In this document: piece after piece, positions 7,585 to 40,162 of the stretch
Numbering within the stretch: the stretch's first letter is position 1
Layout: the number at the start of each line of letters is the position of its first letter
Source: Gnetum montanum
Taxonomy: Eukaryota; Plantae; Gnetophyta
NCBI GenBank assembly: GCA_015680685.1
Contig: MNCI01001065.1
Span: 1,805,612-1,869,611 of the forward strand
Reading direction: 5' to 3'
DNA: 64,000 nucleotides
The notes under the pieces: generated by a model
The model's input: the letters and a program-made list of their open reading frames with translations, nothing else
Databases searched by the model: none
What the model was told of the DNA's origin: nothing
Translations under genes and position numbers: made by a program

Positions 7585-7590
7585 TTTTTC

Positions 7591-12253: not shown

Positions 12254-15200
12254 TTACGCATCCCCTCTAGCACCACTGTCTCCCGTATCCCTTAACTCTG
12301 CCTCTAAGCCTAGCAAATCGTCTTCATATCGGCCGTCCCTTTTAGGAAGTATTCCCTCATGAGGAATGTCACCTTCACAGGGTTCTTCCACTAAAAATTG
12401 CTCTCCAAAGTGATGACCTGCGTCAATACACTCTCCTCCCTAAACGTACACCTCATCCTATTCACCTTCTTCGTTTGTTTCTTGTAACTACATACAACAA
12501 GTATATTAGCAAAAGCCATGATAGGACAATTCAGAAAATTCAAATTCAATAACATTAAAACTCACTCGCGATGGCCCTGCATCCACAGCAAAGGGGAGTT
12601 GATCTAAGCCGACCCATAGACGTTGCATAATCTTGTCTTCAGTCAACTCAGACCAAACCCTGTTCCTCAAATTAGTTCCAGCCTTAACCTTCCCCTTCTC
12701 CACACTAGTCCACCGAGGTGGTTCAAGGAAGAAGGTAGGGACTGTGGTCTCTCCCCCAAGAAGAGTAATTTCTCTTTCCAAGGACGTGCTCACCGTCACC
12801 TGCTCCTGGAACTTCTCGAAGACCTCAGACACACCAATGACATCGAGGAACAATCGCAAAGATTGAGCTTCAACGGCAGAATCTCAATAATGCTGCTGAT
12901 AAGCGATACTTTCTCGCTTATACAGATGCTTATGATCTTTTTGCTTCTACCCCCACTCTTGGACACTTGCACAAAAGTCCTTCCAGTCTTGATTCTTCTA
13001 GGCTAGGAGCTCCATCTACATCCTTTGCTCGACCAATTCATGACTGGTTTGTACGCTGTTTCTGACTACAGTCCAGTAGCCAGTGTAGTCAATGACAGCT
13101 GTCCGCCAGTCCTCTTCACCCATTCCTCGAGCTCGTAAGAATTCACATCACGACCTTAAATCTTCGACCTCTCTGGTCAGAGACATCCTTTCCTTCTCTG
13201 ATCTCTGCAGCTTCTTCCAGAGGTCTTCATTGACATTCTGACTTTCCCACAAGGAGCGTGTCGAACGTAACGCACATTTACGCATTTCTTCGTAAATGTT
13301 GCGTGGCACAACCGTTCCTTCCAATGAGGGTTCGATGGTGTCCAGGTCAATGGGCTCCGTAGAGTCCCATTGAAGGTGAGCTCCTGATGACAAATATTAG
13401 GTCAAACGTAATTAAGTACTGTAACCTTATAACAAAATAAGCATACGATAGCTACAACATACCAGCCCCAAGATCGACGCGTTCTAAGCGCTCGATCATA
13501 TCACCGACGACGCCTTCCATAAAGGTAAATTTATCGGGGAATTCGCCCCACACTCTACTTACAATGGTGGACGGGGAATCACCTCGTTCATTTGTAGTAT
13601 AATTAAGTCAAAAATTTTGGCTAATAATAGAATCTCTTAAAAATTTTAATAGACTGATTACCTCTTCCTATCCCAGTGGGAAGTGCATCAACATTCTCGG
13701 CCTCCACTCTCTCTTCGCGCACAAGGATCTATGCGTCACTCACTCTAATAACTAGGGCCTCCTCTTCCAAAACTAGGGCCCCTTCCCCACACCGTAACAC
13801 CATCGCCCCTATCTCAGGGGTCAACCGCTCTGTAGGTCTCCCTGTTCATGCCATATAATACACTTAAATAATTCAAAATACCCTGAATAAGTTGCGTAAT
13901 ACAACAATTACCATAACTTTTACTGTATCCTCTCGCTTACCAAGTGGAAGTTTACTCCTCTAAAACCTAACCTGTACAATTCTACTTGCACCACCTGTCA
14001 GCTCCACAAGCACCTCAATTAGACGAGGCCTTTTTCATTGAACCGAAGCGTCTACTATTTCTGCCGCCAGGCATTTTCCCCGTGACGCATCCCCGGTGTA
14101 AGAGGGAAGTGCCCCATCTACGCTGTCAGAGCCTCGCGTTCGAGGTGCCGCCACATTCCTAATCGTTATAGAAAGTGACTCCCCAATTCCCTCTGGAGGA
14201 TCCTGTGATCAGGTAGTGCCGAAGAGGTGGGAGATCCAGGGTTTGGATAACTAGTCTCGGTCATGTTGCACCCAGACCCCATTCCTCTGGACCACCAAAA
14301 ATTTGGCAAAACGTAGGAGGCAAGCTAGGAAAAAGGTGAAGTGCACATTGAAATGGGACTCGAGCTTTTGGTAGAGCCTGATCATTTCAGTGTGTAACCC
14401 TTCAGCAAAATAGCTCGCCCAATCAAATTGGGTCCCTTCCTCTATCACCTCTCACATGATACGGGCCTATTCTATGGTGAAGAACTTCCCCTACGAGAGT
14501 GTTCTGGGGAAGGCCCGGGCTCGGAAGAGGGGATAAATGGTCTTGGCAACCTCCAACTCGATCTTTTCACAAGGAATGCCCTTCGTGTCCTTCTTAGTCC
14601 CCAGCCACTCCTCCATCTCTTCCTGAAATTTGAGGCTTCTCCTCGACTTTTCTTCTATGGGAAGACCATCAGAGGGGACGTCAAAAAGGTCAGTAAACAA
14701 CTAAGCGTCAATGTCAAAATGTACACGCACATTATGCATGCGCGTGCAAAAACGTTCAGCCCCCTCGCTGAAGGAGTTAACCAGGATTAGCATTTCACTT
14801 ATGGGGACATCGAGGGTTATAGCCAGAAACAAATGCATCAGCCTCGCCTCCCGTAGCTTAGTGACCAACACAGTTGGAGCCGCTGCGTGGCCGAGCCAGT
14901 GTTGTGCTTCCTTTATGTTGCCATAACGGAAGAGGAGGGTGTTCGCCTCACGGCCGGAAATCATGATGGTAACTTCCCAAGATTTCCTAACTGATAACAC
15001 AAGTCAAGATAGCAAAGACAATGTTATACAACATTTCAAANNNNNNNNNNNNNNNNNNNNNNNNNNNNNNNNNNNNNNNNNNNNNNNNNNNNNNNNNNNN
15101 NNNNNNNNNNNNNNNNNNNNNNNNNNNNNNNNNNNNNNNNNNNNNNNNNNNNNNNNNNNNNNNNNNNNNNNNNNNNNNNNNNNNNNNNNNNNNNNNNNNN

Positions 15201-16093
15201 NNNNNNNNNNNNNNNNNNNNNNNNNNNNNNNNNNNNNNNNNNNNNNNNNNNNNNNNNNNNNNNNNNNNNNNNNNNNNNNNNNNNNNNNNNNNNNNNNNNN
15301 NNNNNNNNNNNNNNNNNNNNNNNNNNNNNNNNNNNNNNNNNNNNNNNNNNNNNNNNNNNNNNNNNNNNNNNNNNNNNNNNNNNNNNNNNNNNNNNNNNNN
15401 NNNNNNNNNNNNNNNNNNNNNNNNNNNNNCCCTGTGTAGAACCGACTAACAAATTTTTCAAAATGGCTGCAGCCACATCGCCCAACAAATGCGACCAAAT
15501 GATGATGCTGTAGTTACACAACAAAAACTACAAAAAATCTAGCGCATCCTTCTGGAACCATATTGCTTTCCCCTATAGACGAGTTTGAGGGGGAGGAACA
15601 TTGGCTACGGGAGGGTTTATACAACACAAAACCCCGACTATGTCCAAAACAATTAGGACAGGTTTCACCATTATGCTGTACAGAACATAAACACATTACC
15701 ATCAGACAAAAGACTAAATCTAGATTTCATTGCATGCTTAGGCAAACTATAGGAAAACTACAAATTACGCTTTAGCCATGCAGCCAAAATCGCTTAAACC
15801 CTTGCAACAGTGCAAGGTTTTTCTCAGACAATGGCGATAGACACAATACCGCTATCTAAACCCTTGTTTTAATACAAGGTCTATATCCCAAAACTCTAAT
15901 TTATGCAGATAACTCAAAAGAATTAAAATATATATATCACCGAAAGCAATGCGAATAAGTGAGAGATGGCCTACTGTTTCAAGGGAGTAACATCTCGTAC
16001 TTCGACCAAAGCCTACGAAGCGCGCTACAGACTCCCTTGCACTTCATCGATTTTCGCCAATTTGGCATTCTTTCCTCTCACCTTCGGTGCCAT
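12254..16093 (-). pseudogene. Antisense 8-exon accessory gene of element A (FCP1/HAD-like, PMD-like, coiled coil); exon 3 lies in the N gap
   Basis: Inferred exons: 16093-15975, 15675-gap, 14990-13941, 13841-13662, ~13591-13463, 13383-12566, 12487-12254. GT-AG borders except one decayed acceptor near 13591; colinear at protein level with 27222-31615. Confidence 0.85.
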
Positions 16094-16567
16094 AGTTACA
16101 GTTCTATAAACCTTCACAAATAACGCATTGCTATCTTTTGCTCTTTTTCCCTCTCTCTGTGACAGCTGAATTTAAATTCGTAATAGCCAACAACCTGTTT
16201 TCGATAAGAACCGTCTACTTATAACATGCAAGACTAACCGACTTGACGCCTGATTAAAGCAGGGCTTGCCCAAACGCTGGTGTCAGCATGAGCTGGAACC
16301 CAAAGATTAGGGCATTAATGTGGTAGATATCACATGCATTACGGTCCGAAACGACCTTAAACTACTACACCTTATCACTTCGTAATCGGGTCACATTAAT
16401 TACAGGCTATTCACGGTATTCAAAATTTAGTTAGCTCTTCACGCTCGACAATGTCATAACATACCTTTTCAAACTACACCAAGCATCATACACTAATACT
16501 TACGACATTTAACTTAGCATTTTCCTAATCACTTTCATATTTGGCAATTTTGCAGGACAGTTAGCAA

Positions 16568-19160: not shown

Positions 19161-19189
19161 CTACATATCCAGTGTTAACATCAGGCGTA

Positions 19190-19570: not shown

Positions 19571-20701
19571 ATCAAGCGAGCGTAAATGTCTTTGTGCAGC
19601 TGCAAAATGAACAGGGTGGGATGTTGGGATAGTCCCAATATCGCTACTTCGCGGGCATTCTGCTGATTCCTCAGATATGTTGAAAGGCATACTATTGATC
19701 CCTCAGAGATGCCGCCACTGCACCCACTTTAGCGGTGGCACCTCTAAGAGGTTAGTTTCACCGTCTGAAGCCCCAAAGGAGTTCTCATCAACCACGGCCT
19801 TGGGGATCTCTGCTCATCATCACTATCAGACTCTAGCTTCACAGATTCACCTAGCTAGTTCTTTACATAACCAGTTGGGTGCGATGAGTCTAATTTTTTT
19901 GGCGGTATGCTAGGCCGAGCATCAACATTGAGACCCTGGCCTCTTGCTATGGTCCCTTGCCCATGGCCGGCTCACTCTTTCTCACCCTGGACGGTACTTG
20001 TTTCAACAACTTCTTCGGCGATTCGGTTGAGCAATGGTGTCCTCTGTTTTCTTCTTTGATTGCAGGTTACTTGCTACGAGGACATCATTCAAAAGTACAT
20101 TCACCTGAGCAGTGAAGTACAGACAGTGTTTTGTGATGGCCGCTTAGGTTAGCCTGTCTACTTAGGAGTGCAACCCTATCTTCCTCATAATCCTAACTCT
20201 TGCTCCTATTCCTCTCCTTGGTCATTCCATTTGTTTTCCTTGTACAAAATATGAATACGCAATATACGCTTTCTGCATTTGCATTACAATCAAGTCCATG
20301 AACTGGCGCAACGCAACTCGCCTAGTGGGCACCAAAAAAAAGTCGGCAAAATGGATGAAAAAAAACCCATCCAGGCCGTGCAGACGTAACAGAATTCGTC
20401 TATGCAAGCCCCTTTATCTACAATATGATGGTATAACCTCATGCAAATGCAATCGTAGGAGAAAGCCTGATCTCTTATGTGCGAAAAGCCATACTCACAT
20501 ACTTGAGCCTTCCCCGAACCTCTCTCTTCTTGCCTCTATAAGAATTCCCTCCTGTACCATTTTATCTTCAATTCTCCTCACTTCTGCACTTCCTGAGTAA
20601 TCGTCGATGGACGTTGTTGGTACTTTTACCCATCCAATGTTTCATATTCTTTGTCGACGTCTTTCGGGCAAGCCCTCTAAATGTCAACAAAGAGGGGCCA
20701 T

Positions 20702-22286
20702 TGAAACACCGTGAGAATTGCGAATCGGCCTAGGGCAAAAATTCACGATTCAGGCAAAAGTTTGCAGCAAAAATCCAGAAGATAGAACAAGGTAAAGAGG
20801 CATGCAGCATCAAGTCTCCAAGTTTCTTAAAAATTCCAACTTTGTTTTGTTTTCTCTCTTTACACCACATTACGCAACATAGCATCATGTCACTCGGCGT
20901 AATTCTGCTTAATGTAGCGCGATATTGGAAGATAGCTTACTTCGACGAATACGACAAATTTTAAGGCCTAAGCAGCGGACTACAACTTGTCGCATATTCC
21001 ATCAAGTCTTTTGTTTAGGACTAAATTTACGCTCCATTACGCAGAGCAGCGTAATGAGCTTCAAGGAAGTCAAAGTCAGAGTCTAAAGGAGCACGGCAGA
21101 TTGACTTCTTCCTTTTGCAGATTGATCGCTTTACACTTATTATGCTACGCAGCATAAACAAGTGTCACTTATTGTGAGGTTAACCATTTTTATGCTCCAT
21201 TATGCTTTGCAGCGTAAATTAGCGCAAAGCAGCTTGAGTTAACTACCTTTATGCTCTATTACGCTCTACCACGCTATACAGCATAAACAAGTGTAATACA
21301 GTATAAAGTTAGCTAAGGCAGTACTAGATACACACCTGCTATCCATACACAGCAATACGCTTATCAACGTATCATAGCGTAACCATGAGGTGGCTTCAAC
21401 AGGAGTGGTTTACAGTGTACTTCACCCCNNNNNNNNNNNNNNNNNGCATGACCAGCTTTAACATAAAAATTGTCAAGTCAACGATATTTTGAAAGTTCGA
21501 GACACGTGTCATCAAGTTTGTGCCTTCCCACGTGATGCTAAACTTATAAATACTCCAATTGGCGGAGGCAAAAGGGGGATTTTTTCTTCTTTTGAAGGAT
21601 GGAAGACATTGTTTGAGCATTGGCAGCAAGAGCAATCAGTCTTTTGGTGAAAATACTATCCCCTTCATTGGCGATCATTAGTAGCTTTAAGCAAAGACTA
21701 TTGAAGGCAAAAGGAGCAGATCAGAGATCAAGAGATCATCTAGTATGATTGGCAAGGTTTATTGATCAGAAACAGTTGATTGATAAACATCCAGGCTTGA
21801 CCTTCCTTGCATTCCACTTTTGGCTTACAAAGTAGATCAAACTTCATTCTGTACTCCCTTTTGAACAGTTTTCTTGTTGTTTTGTGTATACTTCGCACAA
21901 AGATAAGCGAAGTCTGCCGTTGGAACGTTGTATGCAATATATTCAGCTTTCGAGTCAAAACATAGATATTGGAATTACGCATCTCTTCTAAATCTGATCT
22001 TCCTTGTTGTGTTGACGTTGTCATTATTTCAAGTTCTTTACATTATTTTCTACTCCTTCTATGATTCATCGAATTAATTCGTTTCATGGAATATATATAT
22101 AATACATATACTATCGTGATATTCGATAATTTACTGATTAAGTAAGTCCCTGTCTGATCGACAAAATCGTTTAGGGCACCTTGGATTCATTTTCTCCAGC
22201 ACAACCCTCGCACAGATCCGTGGTTAAGACTGTGTACACGAATCTTCGCTTGGTATTTCCAACGACCGACATTTTCCGTCATTACA
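20702..22286 (+). repeat. 3' LTR of element A, preceded by the PPT AAAGAGGGG
   Basis: Direct repeat of 6147-7584, followed by the TSD CTAAT. Confidence 0.95.
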
Positions 22287-22759
22287 CTAATCACTGGGGA
22301 GGCTGTTGAAACAAGTGTTGTCCGAAGAGAAAAGAAGAGCGCAGGCCATGGATAAGGAACCGTAGCAAGAGGCATTGGTCCCTTTGTTGACACCGCAGCT
22401 CAGGAATTCGCCATCGACAACCAGATTCATCTTATCTGTCTGACTAGGAGAAGAGCTAGTCAAATGAATCTATGAAGCCAGAGTCTGGCGACGGTGACGA
22501 CTGGAGGCAACCAAGGCTATGGGTGACCATAGTTTCCTTGGGGCCCCAAGTGGCAAGGCTGACCCTAGGAGTTGTAATTACTGAGTGGTCACTATGGCAG
22601 CATCTCCGAGGGGTCAGTAGTATGCCTTTCGGCATATCCAAGGAATCAATAGGATGCCTGGAAGGTAGTGGCATTATGTCTATTCCAACACCCTACCCAT
22701 TCTATCTGATAGGGATGTCGTGCAAGAATGATTAGGCTCGCTTGCTTCATGGATCTATT

Positions 22760-23227: not shown

Positions 23228-26200
23228 CTAAATGTGGTACTGCTTCAAATACATATGATTCACTAGATTTGGAAGTTCGTTGACGTCGATGTCCACTAAC
23301 TTGAATGCTTCATTGCCGTATGTGTCGACGACCAGGAAAGGGCCCTCCCAGCTTGCAGAGAATTTGCTCACCAGTTCACGAACGACCTTAAGAACCAAAT
23401 TTCCTTTCTTGATCAGTCACTGATGCAAGTTGCGATGATGCTTCTATCGTTGCATGTCCTAATATTTTTCGATATTTTCAAGTGTTTGGGTGCATTTCTC
23501 CTCCACTAAGTCTAGATCCACGATCCTAGACTCATTGTGTTGAGTCTCATTTATAACCGTGGAGAGGACCATCCGCAGTGAGGGAACCTATAGTTCAAGG
23601 GGCAACACTGCTTTAGATCCGTAGACTAGGCTGTAGGGTGTCCTACCGGTAGCTATTCTGCATATTGTACGATAGGCCCATAGCACGTAGAGGATTTTTT
23701 CATGTCATCGCTTCTTGTTGCTGCTGAGCATTTTTTTGAGTAAATTGATGACCACCTTATTTGTTGCTTCTGTTTGACCATTCACTTGTGGGTAATAAGA
23801 TAAGAAAAAAGACTGCTTAATACCAAGGGTGTTGCAGAAAGATTTGGTTTCGGTACTACTAAATTGTGGTCCATTGTCAATCACAATAGTCATGGGAAGC
23901 CCAAACCTAGTTACTATGTTGTCCAAGATAAAATGATAAACCTGTTGAGATGTAGTTTTTGTAGGGGAATAGCCTCGACCCACTTCATAAAGTTCTCGGT
24001 AGCGATAATAATGAAGTTATGTCCTGCGAAAGACTTAGGCATGATGGGGCCTATGATGTCTAGTCCCCATCGTTGAAATGGCCAAGTGATCTATGTAGTG
24101 TGCAATTCAGTTGGTGACACATGTATTAGATTTGCATAATGCTGGCATGTGTCACATGTCTTAACCTTAATAAGGCAGTCTCGTTCCATGTACGGCTAGT
24201 AATACCCCAAGCGTCTAATTTTAGCGGCCATGGCTCACGAGGCCATGTGTCCTCCACATAGTCCTTCATGGACTTCGTTAACTATCCTTTGCGCTTGGTC
24301 ATTATTAATGCAGGTTAGCAATAGTCCATCAAAAGAGTGCCTACATAGAGTACTGTCTCCAATGATGATGTATTGCCTGGCATGCTTACAGATTGCGTCT
24401 TTTTGTACAGGTGTTAACTCATGCGATGGTTCACTATGCAAAAGGTAGGCTTTAATGTTGTCATACCATTCTGGCATTCCTTTCGCACTTAAGGAAGAGA
24501 TTTGCACCGCTTGGATGACAGGGTCTATACATTCTATCATTAACGTGGGCAAGGTGGTGAACAGGCGAGGTGACACGTTTAAAGCTAGTGTAGCTAGTGC
24601 ATCAGCTACTGTGTTCTCACTACGTGGCACGTGCCAGATGTCAGTCATTGTGAATTATTTCAAAAGATCTTTAGCCATATGGCAGTAGGGCTACAAATGC
24701 ACAACTTTGCAGGCATAGACTTCTGTAATTTGATTTACAACAAGCATCGAATCACCTCGGATTACCAGGTGTTGGATGTTTAGTTCTCTAGCTACTAGTA
24801 ATACCCTAAGGAGCCCCTCGTATTCTACCACATTGTTTGTACAAGGAAACGCTAGGCGGTAAGCCAATGGGTGAACATCCTCAGGGGAAAGCATAATGAT
24901 GATGATGGCACTGCCGCCTCTGGTAGTCAAAGATCCATCAAAATATAACATCACCTCGAGGCTTGTTGATATAAGGCTTACACTATGTATATGTTCATTA
25001 GGAAATTTAGGCTCTATCGTGGCCTGATCGTTAACAAGTGATGTCACAAGCTAGTCGGCTATCACTTGGCCTTTCGTGGAAGATTGGCCAGTGTAGTGCA
25101 AGTCAAATTTTGCTATGATGGCTTTCCAGTGGGCTATCCTACTACTCTCATATAAATTGTTTATGATGGCTCGCAGAATGTTGTTCTTGCAAATTATGTT
25201 AACCTGGCTACAGAAAAGATAGTGTCTACATTTTTTAAGTGCAGACACCAAGGCCAAAAATTTATGCTCTACTTCATTGTACCTCGTTTTGTATGCAAAT
25301 AGAGAAGGATTTCCAACCTATCGTCCCTCTTTTGACACAACAACGCACCTATGGACACATCGGAACTTGCTAGGTAAATGTAGAAAGGCTGATCCCTTTG
25401 TGGTGGGAAAATCACTGGCAAATGTAGCAGCTCTTTCTTTAGGTTGTCAAATGCACGTTGGCAGTCCTCGGTCCATTCGAAGTTAACCCCCTTCTTGAGA
25501 AAATGTTGTATAAGAAGTAATTTGTCTGTCAACTTTGAGATGAACCTCCGAATAAACTGTAGCCTACCCTGCAACCCACGTAGTTCTTTGAGATTTGTAG
25601 ATGGTGCCAGGTTAACAATGGCCTTAACCTTGTCAAGGTCAACTCGTATGCTAGCCTCCAATACTACAAACCCCAACATGCATCCAGTTTTGACTCCGAA
25701 TACATATTTTTTTGGGTTGAGCCATAGGTTGTGCCTGAGACATCGTTTAAGGATCAACATTAGGTCCTCTGGGTGATCTTCCGACTTCCTAGATTTAACA
25801 ACTATGTCATCTACATAGTCGTTCAATCTTTCTAATAGGTAATCACTAAAGATATATGTCATGGCACGTTGATAAGTTGCTCCAGCATTTTTTAGCCCAA
25901 AGGGCATCATGATATAACAGAAAGTTCCCCAGGGGGTCATGAAAGTTGTAGTTAGTTGATGTTCTGGGTTGATATGGATTTGATTATATCCCGAAAACCT
26001 ATCCATAAAGGATAGTAAAGCATGGCCAGCTGTTGTATCAATAAGTTGGTCGATACCCAATAATGGAAAATTATCTTTAATCGTTGCCTTGTTCAGATTG
26101 CGAAAGTCTATACAGATGCGTATTCCTCCCGTTTTCTTAGAAACAACAACAATGTTTGACACCCAGTCTAAATAATCAACCACATGGATGAAACCAGCTT

Positions 26201-26674
26201 GATATAGCTTGGTGATTTCATCACGCACTGCCAATGTGATTTTAGGCTTAATCTTCCATGCTTTCTGTCTAACCACTTTGATACTCGGGTCTAATACGAT
26301 GTTATGCTATATTAGTTACGGGTCTAAACCCGGCATGTCTTCGTACGACCATGCGAACACCACAATGTTATCTTGGAATTCTTGAGATATGCCTCTCTGC
26401 ATTTGTTGGTCAAGGAGGGAACTAACCTTCAAAGTTTTTTTTCCCCTTTGTACGTAACCACAGAGACCTCAATGAGGAAATCCTCAATCACGTCACCAGC
26501 TTCCAGGTCTAGGGTCCAGGCCAAATGTTCTAGCTAGTCTGGGGATATTTCCAAGGCTGCTATGGTTATGTCACAGGAGAGGACGTTGGTTCCTATCATT
26601 GCAAGATTATTTTGTCTAAAAGTTTCCCCATATGGGCCTATTAGGACTAGGGTTACAAGTAAAGCTTTGTCCAT
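23228..26674 (-). pseudogene. pol: pol of element B: RT, RH, archaeal-type RNase H, integrase (with stops and frameshifts)
   Basis: RT MPFGLKNAGATYQRAM...YVDD; aRH LYFDGS...TNNVVEYEGLL; INT HEGLCGGH and IDNGPQF. The order RT-RH-aRH-INT is that of Tat elements. Confidence 0.95.
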
Positions 26675-27221
26675 TTGTGAACTAACTTGCAAAACTGCCA
26701 AGAATGAAAGTTGTTACATTGTTTTTGTCACCATGATGAAATGATAGAAGGCTTTAGAGGTACGTGTCCAAAAATGTTGCCAGTTTAAGGTCTTAGCAAA
26801 TTGTCATAATATACATAATTTGTAAGAAAATAGCGAGTCAGGTAAGGTTTCTCCAGACTATGATGAAAGGTATAACGTGGCGTGTCTAGCATGGCAAACA
26901 GCTAATTTAGGATTTTGTGCAGACTGTAGTTAATGCGACTGTAGATAAGCTATGCATTAGTTTAGGATCTTTTTGAACCGTCATCAATGCGATATCTACG
27001 AGATTAATGGTGCGATCTTTATGCTTCATGTCGAACTGACATGTCTACGTTTTGGGAAATTTCCGTGTTGATCGAACATGAAAATAGCAAGTTTTCACCA
27101 TCACGTTTATAAGTAGATGGTTCGTCCTCAAAGTAAATTGTAAACATCGCGAGGTTGAGTTAGGATAAAGCATAGAGAAAGTGTAAGTAGATGATTTTGT
27201 TAAGGTTATTCAGGCGTAACT

Positions 27222-30200
27222 ATGGCACCGAAGACCAAATGCAAGAATGCCAAGTTGACAAGGATTGATGAAGTACAGGAAAGCTTGGGGCAAATTTCGA
27301 AGGTGCGAGTTGAAACTCAAGAGGCTACTCCACTCGCCCAGTAAGTTGTTCTTCACCTTCTTTGTTGGGTTATTTTCCCTATTATGATGTCGTAATTTGT
27401 ATTTGTTTCAAATATGTTCTCTATACTAGTTATTAATACCTGCTTGTGATAAATACGCTACTATGGTTTGTAATATTACTCTGGTCCCCATTGTCAGAGA
27501 CAGACCTTGCATCGACGTAAGGGTTTGGACAATCTTGAGTAATATTGCATAAACACCATACGTAATTGGTCAGGAGTCTAGGTGTTGTACCTTTGTATAA
27601 TGCAAACAAGGTTTCGTTGCCTTGCCCGCGATGGTTTTGTGTTACACTAGGGCAATATGCGGTGCTACCTTTATCACCATTGTCAAAGATAGACCTTGCA
27701 CCATCGCAAGGGTTTGGGTGATTTCGGTAATGCATTTCTAACATAACCTACAATTTTTTGGGAGTCAAGGTAACGAGAACTTCAATTGTTGCGACATTGT
27801 TGATATGTCTATACTGCTTTTCTAATGGTAGTACGTTTTATTGTAAAGGATCACACGAAGGCCAATCCTAATCGTTTTGGACATTGTGGGCTTTTTGTGT
27901 TATTTAAATGTCCCCGTGGCCAATGTTCCTCCTCCCCATGCTCATGTGGGGGAAGAGGCAGTTTGGTTCCGAATGGGTGCACGAGAGTTTCTGTAGTTTT
28001 TATTGCGTAATTTTAGCGTGATTATTTGGTTGCATCTGTCGACCAAAATGGCTGGTGCCATTCTGGAAACATTGTTGGTTGGATCATCGCAGAGTATCTT
28101 AACATTCCTGGTGGATGGGTCAGTCGAGGTCGTAGGTGGGAGGGATCGTGAACAAAGCATCAAGGGTTTGAGATGCTTATCTTGGATCCGGGAAATGCCC
28201 AGGTTTAACTATTATCACACCTACAACATGCTATTCGTGGCTCGTCATCTCATGACCTATTTTCAGAACCCACTTGGCCTCGTGTACTATGCTGGCAGGT
28301 AAGTGCTTTCAAGATTTTATGATGTGCTAACTGTTGTCTATTTTTTTTTTTTGCGTTGGGTATGAGCAATTGTCTATATTCTGTGGCATAGGTTTTTTAT
28401 CAATGTAGATGGTCTCCAAGGTGATACGGACATGTTGTCTATGGCCGAAACAGCCATAAAGGAATTCACTTCCATTGGCAATGTGTGCGCTGGTGTCTTG
28501 GGACAACTGGGATTTGAAATCCAACACTACCCTATCCGATACGCCAAATTCTTCGCCAAGTGTAGAGACTTTGGATGGCTAGATAAGGAGTGGACTTTGG
28601 ATCATCCTATCACCGTTGACAACGTGCAAGAGAGCATTCCACCATTTCCCTTGCCCTTTGGACACGGTAAGTTGTGCTACGGTGATCAACTATGTGACCC
28701 TACGGAATGAGAACATTATACAAGATTTTATTATTTTTGTTGTTTTCTCTAACCTTTTGTTTTATATTTATAGTTAAGGAATCGCAGGAGGTTACGGTGG
28801 TTGCTTTTGGGCGTGAGACGACCAGTATCTTCTTCCGTTATGGTGATATAACAGAAGCACAATGCTGGCTTTGCCATGGAGTGGCCCCAGCTGCCATGAC
28901 CAATAACCTCCGGGAAGCTGGACTGATGGAGCTATTTCTAGCTGTAACCCCCAATGTCACAGTGGCCGAAATGTTGGCCCTAGTCAAATCCTTCAGTGAA
29001 GAAGACGAGCATCTTCACACGCGCATGCGTAATGTGTGCATGAGTTTTGATATTAACGCTCAACTGGTTGCTGATTTTTTTGGCATCTCCTCTGATGGTC
29101 TTCTGGTGGAAGAAAGATCAAAGAGAGGTTCTAAGCATCAGAAGGACATAGAGGAGTGGCTAGGGGTTAAGAAAGAACCAAAAGGCATCTTGGTTGATAA
29201 AATCAAGCTAGAGGTGGCCAATACCATTTATCCCCTCTTCCGAACTCGCGCTTTCCCTAAACTACTCTCCCAAGGAAGGATCCTTGGCATAGAGCAGGCT
29301 TGGATTATGTGGGAGGTTATGGAGGAGGGGACATGGTATAATTGGGCCAAAAACCTTGCTGAAGGCCTGCAGGGTGAAATAAATAAGCTTCACAAGAAGC
29401 TTGACGCTCATTTTAACGTGCATTTTGCCTTCTTCATAGCTTTTTTATAGCATTTTTCCGAATTCCTGGTGGTTCACAGGGATGGAGTCTAGCTGCAGCA
29501 AGATCGTGACCAGATTTCCAAACCATGGATTTCCCAAGTCTTCTGCATCATCTGAACCCAAGATCCTCCTAAAGGTATCAAGGAGTCGCTTTCACTAACA
29601 ACTAAGGATCAGGTAGCACCTCCTATCCGAGGCCAAGATAGCGTGGATGGGGTGCCCCCTTCTTACACCGACAGTATGTCAAGGGAAAAGCACCTAGCAA
29701 CAAAAATAGTAGCTTCATCAGTTCAACGGAAAAAGCATCATCCAACTGTGGATTCTCCTAGTCTGACTGATGAAGAGGGAAGGAAACTATGAATTAAGTT
29801 TCATAGGAACCATCCCCCCGATTGGTAAGTAGAAGAATGCATAATTAATTTATGTATGTTACGCTACGTATAGACATCGTTGCATCACATAGCACTTGTG
29901 AAAAATAAGTAAGGTTTTTTTATTGTTAACTGTGATGTGTTTAGTAGGAAAAGGGAAAGATGTAGAGGGACTGACCCCTGAAACAAGGGCCATAGTCTTG
30001 CGGCATGGGGAAGGGGCCCTAATTTTGGAGAACAAGGCCCCTATTAACATCGTAGGCAGCACACAGGCTCCTGTGCCCAAAGAGGAGATGGGCATAGAGG
30101 ACGTCGAGGTTCTTTTGGATGAGCTCGGAAAGGAGGAGTGGTTCGTCACTGGTGAGTTTTCTCAAGGGCAATCGTCCCACTATTACTCCTAGGGGTTTGT

Positions 30201-31615
30201 TGAATTATAGCTTTGTGTTATTGTAACGTCTTAATTGCTTTTGTCTACTATGCTATGTTTAACTCATTTTGTTTGCGTAGTAGGCACTTCTGATAATAAT
30301 GGCATACCTTTGTCAATAGCCCCAACTCAACACTAGGGTGAGGCTCCTGACAAATTCGGCTTTATGGAATGCATTGTGAACGATATGATCGGTCGCTTAG
30401 AGCGAATCGATCTTGAGATTGGTACCTCACCATTGTTACACAGGAATCATTGAAATTGCGACATTACGTTATTCCATTGCATCTAATTGTTGTTTTTTTA
30501 TGTTACAGGATCTCATCTCAAATGGGATCCCAAAGATCCCATTGACATAGACACTACCCCTGAACCCTCACCGGAGGTGATTGAAGTGCCATGCGGCCTT
30601 TACGATGAGATGCGTAAATGTGCATTACGCTAGGCTCTTTCTCTATGGGAGTGTCAAAATGTCAACGAAGATCTTTGGAAGAGGTTGCAGAAAGAAAAAA
30701 AAGAGAAAACTACCCTAACTGCTAGGGCTAAGGATCTTGATTTGTGGAACGAATTTCTACAAGCTCGAGAGGCTAATGATGAGAATTGGTGAACAACTGT
30801 TGTTGACTATGCTCGTTATTGGATGGTCGTCAGGAACAACGTCCAAGCTAGCCATGAGCTCATCGAGCAAAAAATGAAAATGGATCTCCTAGCCTAGAAG
30901 AACCAAGACTGGAAGGATTTCAGCGCGAGGGTCCAAGAATGGGGGCAAGTATAGAAAGACCATAAGCACATGTACAAACGAGAATGTGCTGCCTACCACC
31001 AACATTACAGCGATTCTGCAGTTGAAGCACGGTCCCTCCGACTGTTCCTCAATGTCATCGGTGCTTCTAGAGTGTATGAAAAATTTTAGGAGCAAGTGAC
31101 AGTGAGTGCCTCCCCTGAGAGAGAGATAACTCTCCCTAGCGAGAAGACTATTGTCCCTTCTTTCTTTCCTAAATTGCCCTAGTGGACTCCTGTGGAAAAA
31201 GGGAAAGTGAAGACTAGAACTGATCTAGGAGATGGCTTTTGGGCTAAGCTCACTGAGGATGAGATCATGCGACACCTATTAGTTGGCCTAGAACAAATTC
31301 CTTTCGCAACCGATGCAGGACCATCATAGGTAAGCTATGTTACGGTTGAATTATTCTTATGCATGATTTTGATGGCAACACTAACGTTTGTTTCATGTCA
31401 AATTGTAGGATCGACATGAAGAGGGTCCCCATGAGGACAAGCCTCATAGAGATAATCATCTTCACGAAGAGGATTCCCATGAGGAGGGGTCCCATAGAGA
31501 GGATCGCTCCCATGAATAGACACCATGCTAAGAAGGTCCTTATGAGGATGATCCTCATGAGGCTGAGATGGAGTTAAATGGCATAGATAAAAGTGGTAAT
31601 AAAGGGGATGTGTAG
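27222..31615 (+). pseudogene. Antisense 8-exon accessory gene of element B, about 1,090 codons, disrupted by stops and at least one frameshift
   Basis: Inferred exons: 27222-27340, 27849-28298, 28392-28666, 28774-29824, 29948-30151, 30284-30421, 30509-31329, 31409-31615. Donors are GTAAGT (x4), GTGAGT, GTACCT and GTAAGC. Phases join in frame except for one extra C near 29819. Confidence 0.87.
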
Positions 31616-31999
31616 CGTGGTGATATTGGGCAAGCATTTTGTTGTAATAAAAAGAGATAAAGCATAACTTTTTTTTATCAAAGTGATTGTAAAATAATTT
31701 TTTTTTAATTTTATTTTATGAAGGAAAGTGTATCGTCAGAGAGGTTACACATTTTAGGCCACTACGGGCCATTGATAGTTTAAGGCCATTTCGGGCCAGG
31801 CCATCGTATGCGTAAAAGAATAAATAGAATTGCTAGTTTTAGGCCATAGCAGGCCGTAACTAGTTTAAGGTCATTTCGGGCCATGATGTGAATAAAAAAA
31901 CGTAACGAGAACAATGCGACAAGAAAGAGCGTAAATTGCATAATAGTAAACAATGCTGACTGATATAACATGTTGCGCTAATTTGTTCATTTCCCAGCT

Positions 32000-34900
32000 T
32001 CATAGCTGCTTCTTGATCATTTTTAGGTTTGGCAACGCGTATGGACAAGGAGGCTTATTATAGCGTTCCTCTACGCTACCATCTTCTTCCTGGAAGGGTA
32101 GTTCAACCCAAATCAAGCTTTCGTTGACCACTGTGCTGGCCTGTTCAACCATTAGCCAGGGATTTCATCTTCGGGGATTTCAATCTCCGAACCCTGTTCC
32201 ATTTCCACGTTGTTAACTGCTTGAGGGGTCATTTTATCACCATGGATGATCACTTCCCCTCCTACATAGGGCAAGTGGATATCTTGATGAATGGGTGATG
32301 AAACTACCCTTAATTAATCCAACCAATACCTCCCTAAGATTAGGTTAAAGCTGGGCATCTCCTCGATAACGATAAACACTGCGTTTGTGGGAAATTGATC
32401 CCCTGCTACAAAGTTGATGTGCACCGTTCCCTTAACTTGCACTCATGCCCCATTAAATGACTTCAAACATGACATTGTTGTGAGATTGATCTAGTCGATC
32501 AAACCTAGTTTGTCCACTATGGGGAATGGAATGACATTGGCAGCAACTCCGTCATCTATGTGTACTCTCCGGATCCTATACTGGCTGACCTGGATAGTGA
32601 TCAACATGGGCATTTGTGTCACCTGACCCTTTTCTGGGTCATCCTTAATGGATTTTTCATGAAATGTCAATTGGGAAGGTCGTGGTTGTTCAGCAGCGGG
32701 GGGAAGCATAATCAAATGGATTGCTTCTTCTTCCGCTGGCAAGCTCTTGTCCATAGGTATGGATGCTAACATGCGAACCATGGCTTCATGATGCTTCTAC
32801 GATGTCATCAGCAAGTCATAGAGGCTCAGCATTGTATTTTTCTTTTTAAGAGCCTACTTAACTTGCATAAAAGCATCAAAGAGATCATGCCCACGATCTA
32901 GTTATTTGCTACCCTTTTCTTCTTCCATTTGTCCAAGGAGATGGATCTCTCGGGGAGGCATGGTTTTTGGTTGAGGGTTGCATTTTCTTGGGTAGGGAGA
33001 AGATGGTCACATTTGCATAATGTCATCTTTTTTATAGGAAGGTGGGCCAAGGGCATCGAGGCAAGGGGTGTAGGCTTAGGAAATCCCAACGTAAGGCGGT
33101 CCTTAGTTGTGTTATTTGTCATACGCCCTTCTCCTTTCCTGGTAGGTTGTGACTGGGACGTTGACTTAAAGATTTTTCCCTGCATAGCAAGAGCAACTAA
33201 CATCTTTAGCATCCTAATGAAAAAGGATGCCCTAGGTGTGGGTGCAGGCTGGGCCGTAGCTTTACCGACAATGGGTTGCGAAACAAAAGTTCGAGACGAA
33301 ACTAGGAGGACAAAAGGTTGTTGCTGAGTCGCACCTGTTAATGTTGATGGGCTTTTCATCCAAGGTGGGTGAGGAGGCACACGTAACACAAAGGGTTGCT
33401 TTGGCTATGCCTAGCCATCGACTTCCGTACCCACTACATTGATAGAGTACCCTGCGTTATTTGCGTTTAACAAGTCTTGGTACACATGCATGGACTGATT
33501 TTCTAGACGGAGTGGACTACTGCTGTCTAGGATCAATTTACCTTGGTCGATCATGCGTTGAATGTCATCCTTCAACACCCAACAGTAATCCATGTCATGA
33601 CCACAAAGTTGCTGGTAGTCACAAAAATGATCCAGCCTGAAATTCTTGGGGACTGGCAGTTCGTTAGGCAGGGCCAAGGAGCAGTTCTTAAGCAGATCAC
33701 AATGCCTTCTGTGGTGCTTCAGAGCCTCTTTGGACACCATCTTGTGTTGGATGTGGCCAGTTCCCAGTAGTTGCTTTAGAAGTTCTAAAGGCTTTACAAG
33801 TAGAGCCGTGTATTTTGAGTGATCTTTCTGCTCAAAATTAGGCTTCGACTGTGGAGGTGCCTCAGGGGTGGGTGCTGTTTCCTAATCGATGCTATTTGAG
33901 CTAGTTGTGGCCTCAACAAGCACTGTAGGTGCTTTCTTGTTGTTATTTTTCTTTTTAGCCCCTTTGGCCACAGTTGCTACTATTTTTGTTACCGCTTTGG
34001 CCTTGTCTTTGCTCTTGTTGTGGGCATTTTTGTAGACCACATACGCTGGGTCCTTGCTAGCCTCTGTTGCATCTTGAATGCTCTTAGTCTAAGCGAAGGC
34101 TTGGCTAAGGGAGCAAGGAGTAAGGTAATATAGCTTAGACTTAATAAAGTCATTAACTGCCACCTTCAAGATTGCCAACAGATGGGCCTCCGCGATGGGT
34201 TCAAGGATTTCATTCAAGGTGGCGCTCCATCGCTGTATGAACTTTTGAACTGGCTCAAGTGGGTCTTGTTCAACTCCCATTAGTTGGTCCAACATGACTT
34301 CTAGTTTCAGATTGTATTTGAAACAAGTCATGAACTAAGTCAGCAGCTCTTCCAAGGTCGAGATGGAAGAGCGTGGAAGTGCACGATACCAATCTAAAGC
34401 TTTGCCCATTAGGGACATAGCAAAGACACAAATGATGGTATGTGGCCATTATTGTAGCAACAACGACTTTGACCTAAAGGTAACTAGATGAGCGTTGGGA
34501 TCGCCTTCCCCACTATATTTTGTAAAATGAGGAAGTGGCATCCCAAGTGGTAACAACAAGATGGGTACTGTCAAGCTAATAGGATCGTCATGGTAGAAAT
34601 CCATGACCTGTATTGTATCAGATCCGACAACCTTGAGGCGTTTAACCTCCTCAGTAAGGGTTTGAATAAGCTAGAAGGCCTGGTCTAGACCCGTGGGCAG
34701 AGAGGTTGGTTGTGGAATAGCAAGGGGAGCCATGATGGATGGCGAGATAGGGGCAGCAGCATGGCCCGTGAGCGATGCATTCGGAACTATCCCTACTGGA
34801 GGTACTGCCTATGTCATCCACCACCAAACAAGTGGTGCAAGCAGGGCAACTATCTTTGATTGTACCATAGGAAATGCTGTTTGCGTAGTCGACGGCATAG

Positions 34901-36012: not shown

Positions 36013-37261
36013 TATAATGATGGAAAATTTTTGTTGCTAGAAACACTAAGGGGACTTTCCATGTACACAGTTTTAACCCCGGATCCGCGGGTCGTGCTGG
36101 AGAAAACAAATCTGAGGTGCCCTTAACAGTCTTGTCGATCAAATAGGGACTTACTTAGTCAGTAAATTTGTCAACGGTTATATAACGAGGTGATGAGTTG
36201 ATACGAAAATATATTATTGATCTATAGGAAAATAAGATCTGTTCCAAGATCAAATTTCGAAGGCAATGAAGGCGATGTAAATTATGCAAAATGATTATAG
36301 AATTCAATGTGAACAGGACGCAATGAATTGAACTTAGAACATGCACGATCCCAAGATCTGGGATCCACCTTATAAATAAATCTGATGAATAAAATGAGAT
36401 TTACAAGCGGACTTTGGTTTGGACGAAGTACTCGCCACCAACAAGAAGCTACTTAGAGATTAAACAAGCAAAGGTCAATCTACCTTGTTTACTAGCTAAT
36501 CTGGGCACAAGGGAGTCAGGCTCAAAGCAAAGTGTCTTCTTACTTGAAGTCTCTAGTCGAAAGCTTCTCTCTTTCACCATCAATGCTCTTCTATTGCCAA
36601 CTCTTTCTTATCGTCTTGTCAATCTTTGCCCAAAAATGTCAAAAAATTGCCCACTATATTGCCCCCCATTACCCATCGGGGTATTTATAAGATTAGGGTT
36701 AGGAGAAGAACACGATTTAGATGACACATGTCCTGGGCCCACAAACTACTATTGGCCTGATGTGTTGTAGCTAAAGCTTGTGGCACTACGCTGTGTTACG
36801 CTCTGATGTGTAGTATAGCGTATCCACCTTCGCCTTTAGCCTTGAATTTCCAAATATTTAGTAGCATATTGTCTTGTGGCTACGCTGCGATACGCTGGAG
36901 AGCGTATCATAGTGTAATGACTGCTACTACTTGAATTTTGTTACCTTTGTTGCTGCGGCTAAGTCAACTGTGCTACTTGCGTTACGCTATGTCACACTGC
37001 GTAGCATAACCCAGCGTAGCATGACAAAAGTTAAGATTTTTGAACATGGCTAGCTTGCGAAGTTGAAGCATTATTGTTGTGCATCCCTTGTTTTGTTCTG
37101 TCTTATGGGGTCTACTACGCTGAGTTGTGTAGTGTAGCGTAGCAAGCCCTTAGCCGAAAAAAAAAAGAAAACTTGCTGAGATGTGCCACTTGTGGAAATT
37201 TTTTGCCTAAACTTTAAAACTTTTCTGAATCATCGAGGTCTCGAAATTTCACGGTGTTTCA
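36013..37261 (-). repeat. 5' LTR of element B
   Basis: Starts TGAAACACCGTGA on the minus strand, matches 5061-5426 and ends 6 nt before the PBS. Confidence 0.9.
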
Positions 37262-40162
37262 ACAATCATCATCATCTATTTCTAAATTTGGAAGCTCCTC
37301 TATTACTACAGCTTTACCCATATTCTTATAATATCTATATTTTGTATCCTTCTTCTTCCTTCTTTCTTGACCATGACCCTCTTGGTCTCTTCGTTTGTCT
37401 GTAATTTTTAGAGCTATTTGGAACTTCTCATCGAAGGTGTCCCACATCTTGTTTATCTTAATGAATATTTTGATGATAAATTTTTGTATTGGTAAGGTTT
37501 TCCTCTACACCACTTCATCAAGCAGTGCCTCCTCCTTAGTATAATAGAAACACACCTCCCTTTTATGAATGGAAGGATCCTTATTATACTCTTCTACACT
37601 TTTACATTTTTTGAGTTCCCCTTCTTCTTTGGCCACTTGATCTATCAACCTTTGGATTTGAAGGGCTCATAGCTCAAAAATTCTCCCTTGGGCATAAACC
37701 CTAAGAGTTTTTCTTTCTTTGTTCTAGAGCCCATCTATGATATGGGGGAGCTAATCCCTTTGGGAGTATTCATGGCTTGGGCATTGATGCAAAAGTATAT
37801 AGTATCAACCCAAGGCTGCATCCAAGGACTCATGATTACATTATTTCCATCATTGGATTTTTCTTCACAAGTTGAACACTCTGGAGTATATTTGTTACTT
37901 GTCGTTGAAGAGCTTCAATATCATATGCCATCAGTGAATAGATTCTGGTTCTAAGGAATGGTACCAACTTTTAGCTTCCTTAATGAGTGTCCTTGGAAAC
38001 AGTTTCAGCTTTTGCCATTCATTTTCAATGTTCTAGAAGGCATTTGCATTCTGAAAGGCTTGCAGATGGTTCTCTAGATTTGAGTTATATCCCCTTTCAA
38101 ATTTGGGGATATTATTCATATCCAACCTCTTAATTTGGCTATCCTTGCAATGCCTCGTTGGGATTCTAATTGCTTCTAAAATGTTTAGCATATTTTGAGT
38201 AGCTAGCAAGGGTTCATCATAGTCACAATGATCACGATGGCCCCTATCATGTCCATGATGTCTATGATAAGTCCTACTATGCCTTCTTTCTCGATGATGC
38301 TCCTCCCTTTGTTATTGTCCTTACCTTTGTTTTTAATCATCCTAGTAGGTTTTGAATTCCTCCCTATCCCACCATTCATCTCCATCCTGATCATGGTTGT
38401 TCTTCCTTCTATCTTAGCCTCTACTCCTCTTGTTAGAGTTGGAGGAGGAAGATAATGAGGATGATGATGAGGGTGAGAAAGAAGGAGAACTAGCACTAGA
38501 ACGATACCTACTAATTCTTCTCCTTTTGTCCCTACCTTGATCAGCTTGATTTTCTTTATCTTTGTGCTTATTTTTATCCTTGCTTTTGAATGAGTGGCTA
38601 TAGTTGTTATCTTTTGAGGCCTCTTGGTCTTGAGAACCATTCTTTCCCTCATCCAAGTTGTTCATAGTTGATTGCAACCTTTGGTTAAGGATCTCATTAT
38701 CATACAAAGAAGGAGAGTTTGTGTATTAGGGTTCACCTAAAAAGAAGTACTTGTTGTCCTTATGTTGTTGCAAGAATAACTAGGTTGGGACCCTCTTGCC
38801 TTCAAAAGCCTCATATCATGCTTATATCTATCAATCCTTCTTTAGTTAGGCATCAGTGGGGTGATAGTTCCAATTACTATGGTCTTGGACCTCATACTCT
38901 GTGTTAAGTACAACAATGCCCAACTTGATGAGATTGTTCATCAGCATGGGAGGAATAGATTGATCAGGAGGCAACACAATGTTGCCTTCCATATTCCTCC
39001 AGTGTAGCTACTTGTCTTGATATATGATGAAAGGAAAATTTGGATTGTAGGGATCTAGATGAGTGTAAACAACACAAAGTTTTTGGGACATTTTTTGGAC
39101 CTCCTATCTTTGATTGGATCTACTTGTAAATGGTGAAAAGTCATCCCTGCAAGGAGAAGCCATGTTAGCTTTTGCTAAAAATAGTGTGATTGTTCTTGTC
39201 TCCTTAATGATTTATTATTGATTGTTCTTACAACATATTTGTATAATGTTACTATCTTTTTCTACTAGTGAACTTAGCTAAATGGAATCCTTGGCAATGA
39301 TGCCAATAATAAGCAACAAGTATATCCTACATCCAACCATACAAATCACAAGTGTGCACTAGAGATCTGGTCAAATTCTGTGGACTTAGTTCCTAAGTTT
39401 GCCTATAGATAAAAATTGTTATCCTAAGGGTTATGTGATCATTATCTTCCTAACTCTCACTTTTGTATGCTCTTTCATATGGTTAAGTGTGAGTTAAGGC
39501 ATATGATATTTATTTTTGTTTGTGATTTTTATACATTTTTTATCCTAAGTGCTAGGTAAAGCAATGAATGATGGATGATTAATTATTTTAATTATCTAAT
39601 GACTCTAAGGGCTAACTATCCTAACATAAGTATTCATACCCACTTGCCACACACATCCAGAACTCGTATTAATGCTACTCAGTTATCAAGTGATAATTAC
39701 TGGGTGTACCAAATGGCTACTACTGGGATTACTAAGCATTATACGTTATGCTTGAAGCGGTTGTACTAATGTGTTTATTATTGATTATATTAATTATTTT
39801 AATTAATGTAACATGAAATGTAAAATGAATTTAAAGTAAAGTGCTAATTAAAAAAGGTTTAATCTAATCCAAGTGCTACAATGAATGAATGAAATCTTAA
39901 CTTTATTGTCAGTTATGTTAATGCATTTAGGTACATAGCACTTGAGTAAAGTTCCATACAATCTCTTTCATTCATAGTGTGGGAACTTAGAGGGAAAAAT
40001 ATTATAGATCTGAAAACAACAAACTGCAAGGGCTTTGTTCCAATTCAACATGCCATAAATGCAATGGGTACATGCATTTATATAGGTGTGACTTGCATCT
40101 ACATTGATAGGGAATATGTCAATGGGGCTACATCAACGCAGCCAATCGACTATACTTCATCA
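37262..40162 (-). mobile_element. 5' part of an Athila-like element (F): LTR ~40162-39307, PBS 39305-39288, degenerate gag interrupted by element B
   Basis: PBS TGGCATCATTGCCAAGGA; the minus-strand gag matches the 50210 ORF (KRLDMNNIPKFE.GYN...ENEWQKLKLFPRTL). Confidence 0.82.

Follow-up and report, generated by a model that had tools for sequence, protein, structure and literature searches.

Extra genes are a recurrent feature of Tat-clade Ty3/gypsy LTR retrotransposons. The extra ORFs (eORF) are of the PMD-CC type in gymnosperm lineage III and in lineages IV (Ogre) and V, and of the Tr28-CC type in Retand (Ustyantsev 2015, PMC4408406; Neumann 2019, PMC6317226; Vicient 2025, PMC11963269). 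They are often antisense and have been catalogued as single ORFs lying only 5' or 3' of the polyprotein, i.e., upstream of gag or between pol and the 3' LTR. Antisense ORFs between pol and the 3' LTR are found in Grande (gene23), RIRE2, Retand and PvRetro13; they are conserved across copies and of unknown function, and some have their own internal promoter, as shown for Grande (PMC7264820). Ogre elements additionally separate gag-protease from the RT-RH-INT ORF by a proven sense intron that averages 274 bp (Neumann 2003; Steinbauerova 2008; summarised in PMC6317226).

The window analysed here, a stretch of 64,000 nucleotides of Gnetum montanum DNA, contains two old, decayed Tat/Ogre-like Ty3/gypsy elements that are 71-76% identical: element A (+ strand, 6147-22286) and element B (- strand, about 36010-22590). 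Element A is complete, with TG..CA LTRs at 6147-7584 and 20701-22286 that are about 92% identical and the target-site duplication CTAAT on both sides, and it abuts the 3' end of B, whose own 3' LTR was not resolved. Pfam searches detected gag, RT, RNase H, an extra RNase H and integrase. The extra RNase H (RVT_3, E 4e-20) lies in A at 17340-18089, directly upstream of the rve ORF at 18156-18797, which is the position found in Ogre and Retand and a hallmark of the Tat clade, while RVT_1 plus RT_RNaseH_2 were found in B at 25269-26273. In both elements, protease and pol are separated by a gap of 4.9-5.4 kb (11670-16564 in A). On the opposite strand, this gap holds the remains of what is most likely one eight-exon gene. 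The features of this region are as follows.

27108..27123 (+): conserved TATA-containing 16-mer (TATAAGTAGAYGGTTC), 99-114 nt upstream of the ATG, the candidate core promoter of the antisense gene; the same motif lies at A 16208-16223 (-).
27222..27340 (+): exon 1, 119 nt, starting at the ATG (MAPK...), with a GTAAGT donor; counterpart in A at 16093-15975.
27485..27717 (+): intron 1 motif with a small CCTTGCA..GCAAGG hairpin, two copies in B (27485-27528 and 27674-27717) and one in A (about 15846-15790).
27849..28298 (+): exon 2, 450 nt, with an aligned AG acceptor and a CAG|GTAAGT donor; in A from 15675 until an N-run.
28392..28666 (+): exon 3, 275 nt, seen in B only.
28774..29824 (+): exon 4, the largest coding block, 1051 nt in B and 1050 nt in A (14990-13941).
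29954..30151 (+): exon 5, 198 nt in B and 180 nt in A (13841-13662), weakly constrained.
30281..30421 (+): exon 6, 141 or 138 nt in B and 120 nt in A (13582-13463), with an aligned GT donor.
30509..31329 (+): exon 7, the best conserved block, 821 nt in B and 818 nt in A (13383-12566); a charged, coiled-coil-like part followed by a conserved C-terminal part.
31409..31615 (+): exon 8, 207 nt in B and 234 nt in A (12487-12254), an acidic, His-rich tail with a 48-nt tandem repeat in B and an aligned stop.
31776..31882 (+): three copies of a 22-nt motif (TAGTTTAAGGNCNTTNCGGRCC) just downstream of the stop; A has three copies at 11930-12074 (-) and one upstream of the gene at 16343-16364 (-).
12254..16223 (-): second copy of the gene, in element A, from the TATA motif to the stop.
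32003..32796 (-): protease region of element B (element sense strand) that bounds the gap; counterpart in A at 11082-11669.
26672..26700 (-): conserved acceptor-like TTTTGCA(A)G followed by an ATG that opens the pol frame of B; counterpart in A at about 16540-16570.

The first-pass annotation had described a colinear eight-exon antisense gene in both copies, with matching start, splice positions and stop and with introns more diverged than exons, and all of these details are confirmed. The shared start context GTAACTATGGCACCGAAG (MAPK) lies at B 27222 and A 16093, exon 1 is followed by GT in both copies, and exon 4 has an aligned AG acceptor and a GTAAG donor. The aligned stop at B 31613-31615 and A 12256-12254 reads KGDV* in B and RGDA* in A. 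Exons are 66% identical with almost no gaps, whereas introns are indel-rich and 54% identical where alignable, or 36% over all alignment columns. All seven introns are GT..AG, five donors are GTAAG, and the introns (79-508 nt) are T-rich on the gene's strand, with a T content of 0.40 against 0.25 in exons. The reading phases fit at all seven junctions, and the exon length differences of 0, 18, 18-21, 3 and 27 nt are multiples of three; the exception is one extra base in the tail of B's exon 4, such that exon 4 joins exon 5 in frame only with the exon 4 length of A. The N-run in A at 15041-15429 hides the end of exon 2, exon 3 and both flanking introns, and exon 3 therefore rests on B alone, where an open frame is preceded by a T-tract plus AG acceptor, the only one of four candidate acceptors that fits the phase, and followed by a GTAAGT donor. 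The acceptor of exon 6 is not fixed by the alignment.

Substitutions between A and B are codon-periodic, with chi-square p values of 5e-9 for exon 4, 1e-15 for exon 7 and 0.002 for exon 2. In the proposed frame pN/pS is 0.25-0.38, against 0.7-1.65 in the wrong frames and 0.18-0.23 for gag and pol. The individual values are 0.35 for exons 1 and 2, 0.38 for exon 4 up to a TGA at 29553, and 0.25 for exon 7, falling to 0.20 in its second half. The exon 4 tail after about 29690, exon 5 (0.73, with an open frame in B) and exon 6 (0.5) are weakly constrained, at 0.5-0.95. This pattern shows that the gene was under purifying selection, comparable to that on pol, while the two lineages diverged, and it supports the proposal of the first-pass annotation that the gene was a selected part of the element. 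Conservation driven by the element's sense strand was rejected, because those frames are full of stops and codon position 2 of the + strand is the slowest. A segmental duplication of A and B was also rejected, since gag and pol likewise show pN/pS of about 0.2 and A's own LTRs are 92% alike against about 78% between A and B. Gene transduction by plant LTR retrotransposons is documented (PMC7264820) and the exon-intron structure resembles that of an ordinary plant gene. A transduced host fragment carried as a neutral passenger is nevertheless very unlikely, because the periodic pattern is between A and B and hence arose after the capture, whereas neutral drift would give equal rates at the three codon positions.

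Both copies are now pseudogenes without an open spliced frame. B carries at least 15 stops and one frameshift, and A at least 21 in-frame stops; within exon 1, B has none and A has two. The stops are mostly of the methyl-C decay type and mostly pair with CAG, CAA, CGA, CGG or TGG in the other copy. Three stops are shared by A and B, including a TAG at 27994 in exon 2 and the TGA at 29553, but this does not exceed chance for methylation-prone codons (1.4 expected, p 0.14). The shared TGA, the fading constraint from about 29690 through exon 5 and the missing in-frame junction between exons 4 and 5 in B would also fit two or more separate opposite-strand genes, for example with exons 1-4 ending at 29553 and a second coiled-coil gene starting near exon 6 or 7. 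This alternative appears improbable, as the 45 codons after the TGA still give pN/pS 0.44 and 60% identity with no stop in either copy, aligned GTAAG donors and AG acceptors continue through exons 4-7, the phases fit with A's exon lengths, and no second conserved ATG or TATA was seen.

The TATA-containing 16-mer is exact in both copies, is found nowhere else in the window (0 expected by chance) and forms an island in a poorly conserved flank; its promoter function is inferred. The 22-nt motif gives 7 matches against 0.01 expected, all in the gene's orientation and all flanking the gene, while the hairpin in intron 1 does not fold unusually well (z -2.1, -0.5, 0.0). The presence of the 22-nt motif in direct orientation on both sides of the gene, the sharing of PMD domains between MULEs and Tat elements (PMC4408406) and the frequency of nested insertions could suggest that the gap began as a separate mobile element or gene cassette, for example a PMD-bearing DNA transposon, which is carried along without serving the retrotransposon. 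This origin is unlikely, because the gap has no inverted or long direct terminal repeats at its ends, the gene occupies the same place and orientation in two lineages whose gag and pol synonymous sites are saturated, and selection on exon 7 is as strong as on pol, whereas a passenger in a retroelement would drift. The divergence of the gene matches that of gag and pol, indicating that it was already present in the common ancestor of A and B.

In the protease region, the VDDGVA and ILGRSWL motifs were read by eye; Pfam gave no protease hit on the A ORF. The pN/pS between A and B is 0.16 in this region. No conserved sense-strand donor was found after the protease, and a search from the 5' LTR end through the protease (A 7560-11720) gave one unconvincing site inside it. 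Four RNA runs of the same species label (three oligo-dT and one stranded-looking), aligned to 26500-32300, yielded 8-51 partly fitting reads that were 90-95% alike and came from other copies. At a cover of at most about 1-fold, which is too low to count as absence, no joint was seen at any predicted intron or on the sense strand. In one run, reads over the gene lie almost all in one orientation, which is a lead only.

No homologue, Pfam domain or confident fold was found with exons searched singly and in pieces. Pfam searches with 24 exon pieces gave only weak noise (DUF655, GAS, Herpes_glycop_H and WH_PARP12); the GAS match, to a microtubule-binding family, fell on exon 7 at E 0.013, and the first half of this exon is charged and heptad-like by eye. 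HMMER with the exon 4 piece against 1.84 billion representatives returned one spurious repeat protein, word-index searches with the exon 7 piece of A and the exon 2 piece found nothing, and Rfam found nothing meaningful in the gap. AF2 without an alignment reached pLDDT 39 and 47. The LIVLDIVGF stretch of exon 2 had been read as a degenerate HAD/NIF motif, but the FCP1/SCP/NIF phosphatase-like domain (PF03031) is not supported: the motif reads D-I-V-G-F, so that the second Asp and the Thr of the DxDx(T/V) catalytic motif are absent, Pfam, PDB and word searches with exon 2 and exon 3 pieces gave no hit, and the ESM Atlas gave no usable hit, although the domain is broken by a TAG in both copies and could only be searched in pieces. 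Likewise, no plant mobile domain (PF10536) was detected at E up to 10 on exon 4 pieces of B or A, nor was Tr28; the ESM Atlas places exon 4 near plant hypothetical, DUF1985 and PMD clusters (0.92-0.94, with PMD at 0.92, rank 9), which remains a lead only.

We consider it likely, though splicing and transcription have not been shown, that A and B represent two diverged lineages of one Tat/Ogre-like family whose gap carries an accessory gene of about 1,085 codons, kept under purifying selection while the lineages replicated, so that it served the element. In the inferred mode of operation, the gene is transcribed from integrated copies by its own TATA promoter, head-to-head with pol, and the transcript is spliced at seven ordinary plant GT-AG introns and translated. 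In the genomic RNA of the element these introns read as their reverse complement, and they would therefore not be removed and would be copied by reverse transcription. Pol would be reached either by splicing out the whole gap or from its own conserved acceptor plus ATG. The protein is most likely a trans-acting accessory factor of the same general kind as the PMD plus coiled-coil extra ORF of other Tat lineages, and may act in the nucleus or on silencing, but with no homologue found this function is a guess.

A more speculative and rather unlikely possibility is a 'complex' plant retrotransposon with three expression units (gag-protease, pol from its own acceptor plus ATG, and the minus-strand gene), in which a catalytically dead HAD/NIF-like module is fused to a PMD-like module and a coiled coil. 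Such a protein would interfere with the host's PMD/phosphatase silencing machinery, as a counter-silencing factor that can only be inherited because its introns are antisense to the genomic RNA. A pseudo-phosphatase-like block followed by a PMD-like block would parallel the host PMD proteins MAIN/MAIL1 with the phosphatase PP7L, a pair involved in TE silencing (Nicolau 2020, PMC7156037), but neither domain could be confirmed and the proposed HAD/NIF fold is unrelated to PP7.

The first-pass annotation had stated that Ogre carries an intron between protease and RT and that Tat/Ogre extra ORFs lie upstream of gag or downstream of pol, which agrees with the papers consulted, and we found no description of the present layout for such elements. 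A selected, apparently spliceosomal gene inside the polyprotein region widens what a retrotransposon is known to carry, would give a natural example of the reverse-orientation trick by which engineered retroviral vectors preserve introns, and matters for annotation, because gene finders will call these exons as host genes. If the protein acts on silencing, it would represent a new kind of interplay between element and host. As in Ogre, gag-protease and RT-RH-INT are separate ORFs with a non-coding gap at the same place, but here the gap is about 5 kb instead of a few hundred bases and holds a gene on the other strand. HBZ of HTLV-1, an animal retrovirus (named in PMC7264820 and PMC11963269), is likewise a minus-strand gene; it acts as a regulator and is apparently spliced, but it probably has two exons, starts in the 3' LTR and shows no sequence relation to this gene. 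The antisense ORFs of Grande, RIRE2, Retand and PvRetro13 differ in their 3' position, and the review consulted (PMC7264820) does not mention introns in them. With the Tat eORFs, the gene shares a large domain of unknown function followed by a charged region that may be coiled-coil-like and a divergence too great for easy homology detection, but it differs from them in lying between protease and pol and in being split into eight exons.

Self-comparison of the window shows two related LTR retrotransposons in opposite orientation, element A on the + strand and element B on the - strand, which comprise the following features:
6147-7584 and 20701-22286 (+), LTRs of A, about 92% identical, with TG..CA ends and the 5-bp target duplication CTAAT on both sides.
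9098-9880 (+), gag of A, found by Pfam.
11082-11669 (+), protease of A, recognisable by eye from VDDGVA and ILGRSWL.
17340-18089 (+), ORF of A with an extra RNase H (RVT_3), found by Pfam.
18156-18797 (+), ORF of A with integrase, found by Pfam.
About 36010 to 22590 (-), element B.
25269-26273 (-), ORF of B with RT and RNase H, found by Pfam.

The extra RNase H between RNase H and integrase is the hallmark of Tat elements, and this position is typical of Ogre and Retand (PMC6317226). The protease active-site stretch reads V-D-D-G-V-A in both elements (11106-11140 (+) in A and about 32600-32560 (-) in B) rather than the usual D-T/S-G, and the protease is not recognised by Pfam. A and B are 71-76% identical in gag and pol. 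In both elements, the protease ORF ends (A 11669, B 32003) about 4.9-5.4 kb before the pol frame opens (A 16568, B 26674). A lacks about 0.85 kb of RT and RNase H that B retains (17178-17233 versus 26065-25154) and is therefore defective in pol as well as in the antisense gene. B has no complete 3' LTR next to its pol end, and A, flanked by the CTAAT duplication, is inserted right there. A 360-bp direct repeat with 88% identity links the far side of A with the 5' LTR region of B (5066-5427, 22287-22590, 36899-37262), and A may therefore be nested in the 3' LTR of B. Other dispersed repeats of 84-94% identity (1-686/53669-54329, 48130-48531/54570-54971 and 49217-49518/55200-55502) lie in the AT-rich right half of the window and at its left end, and are unrelated to the two Tat elements.

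The first-pass annotation had proposed a colinear opposite-strand gene in both elements on the basis of a shared start context, matching lengths of exons 1 and 4 and an aligned stop, and every one of these details holds. The start context GTAACTATGGCACCGAAG is shared, exon 1 comprises 119 nt in both copies, and exon 4 comprises 1051 nt in B and 1050 nt in A, with an aligned acceptor and a GTAAG donor. The stop codons align, reading KGDV* in B and RGDA* in A. A global alignment of the two gaps on the strand of the gene separates eight blocks from the stretches between them. The blocks are nearly gap-free and 58-70% identical (51% in the last), while the intervening stretches are full of indels and 46-58% identical where alignable. 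Overall, exons are 66% identical, and introns are 36% identical over all columns.

Exon model of the antisense gene in the two elements (B on the + strand, A on the - strand).
E1: B 27222-27340, 119 nt; A 16093-15975, 119 nt.
E2: B 27849-28298, 450 nt; A from 15675, cut by Ns, length not visible.
E3: B 28392-28666, 275 nt; A hidden by Ns, length not visible.
E4: B 28774-29824, 1051 nt; A 14990-13941, 1050 nt.
E5: B 29954-30151, 198 nt; A 13841-13662, 180 nt.
E6: B 30281 or 30284-30421, 141 or 138 nt; A 13582-13463, 120 nt.
E7: B 30509-31329, 821 nt; A 13383-12566, 818 nt.
E8: B 31409-31615, 207 nt; A 12487-12254, 234 nt.

All seven introns are GT..AG, five donors are GTAAG, and the borders lie at aligned positions wherever A is visible. 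The introns are 79-508 nt long and T-rich on the strand of the gene, with a T content of 0.40 against 0.25 in exons. By phase arithmetic alone, the frame found independently in each block by periodicity fits the phase handed on by the previous exon at every junction, with the one exception that exon 4 of B is one base too long; with the 1050 nt of A the frame runs on. All other exon length differences are multiples of three. Exon 3 rests on B alone, because A contains 389 Ns at 15041-15429, and the exon 4 tail after about 29690, exon 5 and exon 6 are only weakly constrained (pN/pS 0.5-0.95). A 48-nt tandem duplication in exon 8 of B (31410-31505 (+)) encodes repeated acidic, His-rich units (GPHED / DSHEE), while exon 8 of A is 27 nt longer and lacks the clear repeat. 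Intron 1 contains a conserved 44-nt motif with a CCTTGCA..GCAAGG hairpin, which is duplicated in B (27485-27528 and 27674-27717 (+)) and single in A (about 15846-15790 (-)), but its fold energy is unremarkable.

Mismatches between A and B follow codon positions. In exon 4, the counts at positions 1, 2 and 3 are 105, 82 and 157 of 353 each (p 5e-9), in exon 7 they are 77, 52 and 141 of about 284 each (p 1e-15), and in the visible part of exon 2 they are 20, 18 and 37 of 83 each (p 0.002). Position 2 is the slowest when read on the + strand of B, and that strand has far fewer stops than any other frame. Uncorrected pN/pS is 0.25 for exon 7 (0.20 in its second half), 0.38 for exon 4 up to 29552, and 0.35 for both exon 2 and exon 1. 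The wrong frames of the same blocks give 0.7-1.65, while gag and pol of the same pair give 0.18-0.23. Synonymous sites are near saturation everywhere. The substitutions compared arose after A and B split, so the selection acted while the gene was already part of the element.

Both copies are pseudogenes. In exons 1, 2 (visible part), 4 and 7, B has 12 in-frame stops and A has 18, and exons 6 and 8 add more. Most stops face CAG, CAA, CGA, CGG or TGG in the other copy, which is the pattern expected from deamination of methylated cytosines in silenced elements. Three stops are shared, TAG at 27994, TGA at 29553 and TAG at 30895. Among 57 codon columns of the stop-prone kind, 1.4 shared stops are expected by chance (Fisher's p 0.14), and the 45 codons after the shared TGA still look coding, with pN/pS 0.44 and no stops. 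The shared stops are therefore interpreted as parallel decay, although an ancestral stop cannot be fully excluded.

The evidence speaks against the alternative that the gap is an independent nested element. There are no inverted or long direct repeats at its ends, it occupies the same place and orientation in both lineages, and it is as diverged as gag and pol. Two small conserved features flank the gene. The 16-mer TATAAGTAGAYGGTTC lies 99-130 nt upstream of the ATG in both copies and is a plausible TATA box. The 22-nt motif TAGTTTAAGGNCNTTNCGGRCC occurs three times after the stop in both copies (31776-31882 (+) in B and 11930-12074 (-) in A) and once upstream in A (16343-16364 (-)). This amounts to 7 matches against 0.01 expected, all in the orientation of the antisense gene and only flanking that gene, and RNA reads show joints that go back among the B copies. 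Just before the pol frame, both elements keep an acceptor-like TTTTGCAG (16540-16570 (+) in A and 26700-26672 (-) in B), followed by CAAATGGAC, an ATG that opens the pol ORF, while no conserved donor follows the protease. Pol may be made from its own start codon on a spliced or internal transcript.

Transcription of the gene from the internal TATA promoter, its splicing, and the survival of the introns because they are antisense in the genomic RNA are inferred. Four RNA runs of the same species label gave 8-51 partly fitting reads over 26500-32300. These reads are 90-95% alike and come from other family copies, and in this small sample, which neither supports nor refutes splicing, none shows a joint at a predicted intron. 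In one of these runs (X10), almost all reads over the gene lie in one orientation, which for the usual stranded design would mean RNA of the gene's strand, but the design of this library is not known.

The nature of the encoded protein could not be established. Pfam gave no real hit on any exon piece of either copy, and HMMER of the 224-residue exon 4 piece against 1.84 billion representatives found one spurious repeat protein. Word-index searches of exon 2 and exon 7 pieces and PDB sequence searches were blank, and AF2 models were of low confidence. The ESM Atlas puts exon 4 next to plant hypothetical proteins (0.94), a DUF1985 cluster and a PMD cluster (0.92 each), which is a lead rather than a test. 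Exon 2 has been read as a degenerate FCP1/NIF fold and exon 4 as a PMD-like domain. The motif in question reads D-I-V-G-F, and because the domain is cut by a stop in both copies, it could only be searched in pieces. This claim remains untested rather than refuted. An accessory, possibly nuclear or silencing-related function is a guess.

Extra ORFs of Tat elements have been described as PMD or PMD plus coiled coil, antisense at the 3' end in lineages III and V and sense at the 5' end in lineage IV (Ogre), while Retand carries Tr28-CC (Ustyantsev 2015, PMC4408406). Neumann 2019 (PMC6317226) sorted extra ORFs only as 5' or 3' of the polyprotein, found them as single ORFs of at least 250 codons, and gives 274 bp as the mean Ogre gag-pro/pol gap. 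The review by Vicient and Casacuberta (PMC7264820) lists antisense ORFs between pol and the 3' LTR, does not mention introns in them, and calls for a search for antisense and spliced transcripts. No report of a multi-exon gene in the PR-RT interval was found in full-text searches of the literature. The gene described here is therefore considered a Tat-clade accessory gene, possibly the relocated PMD-CC gene, in a new place and with spliceosomal introns.
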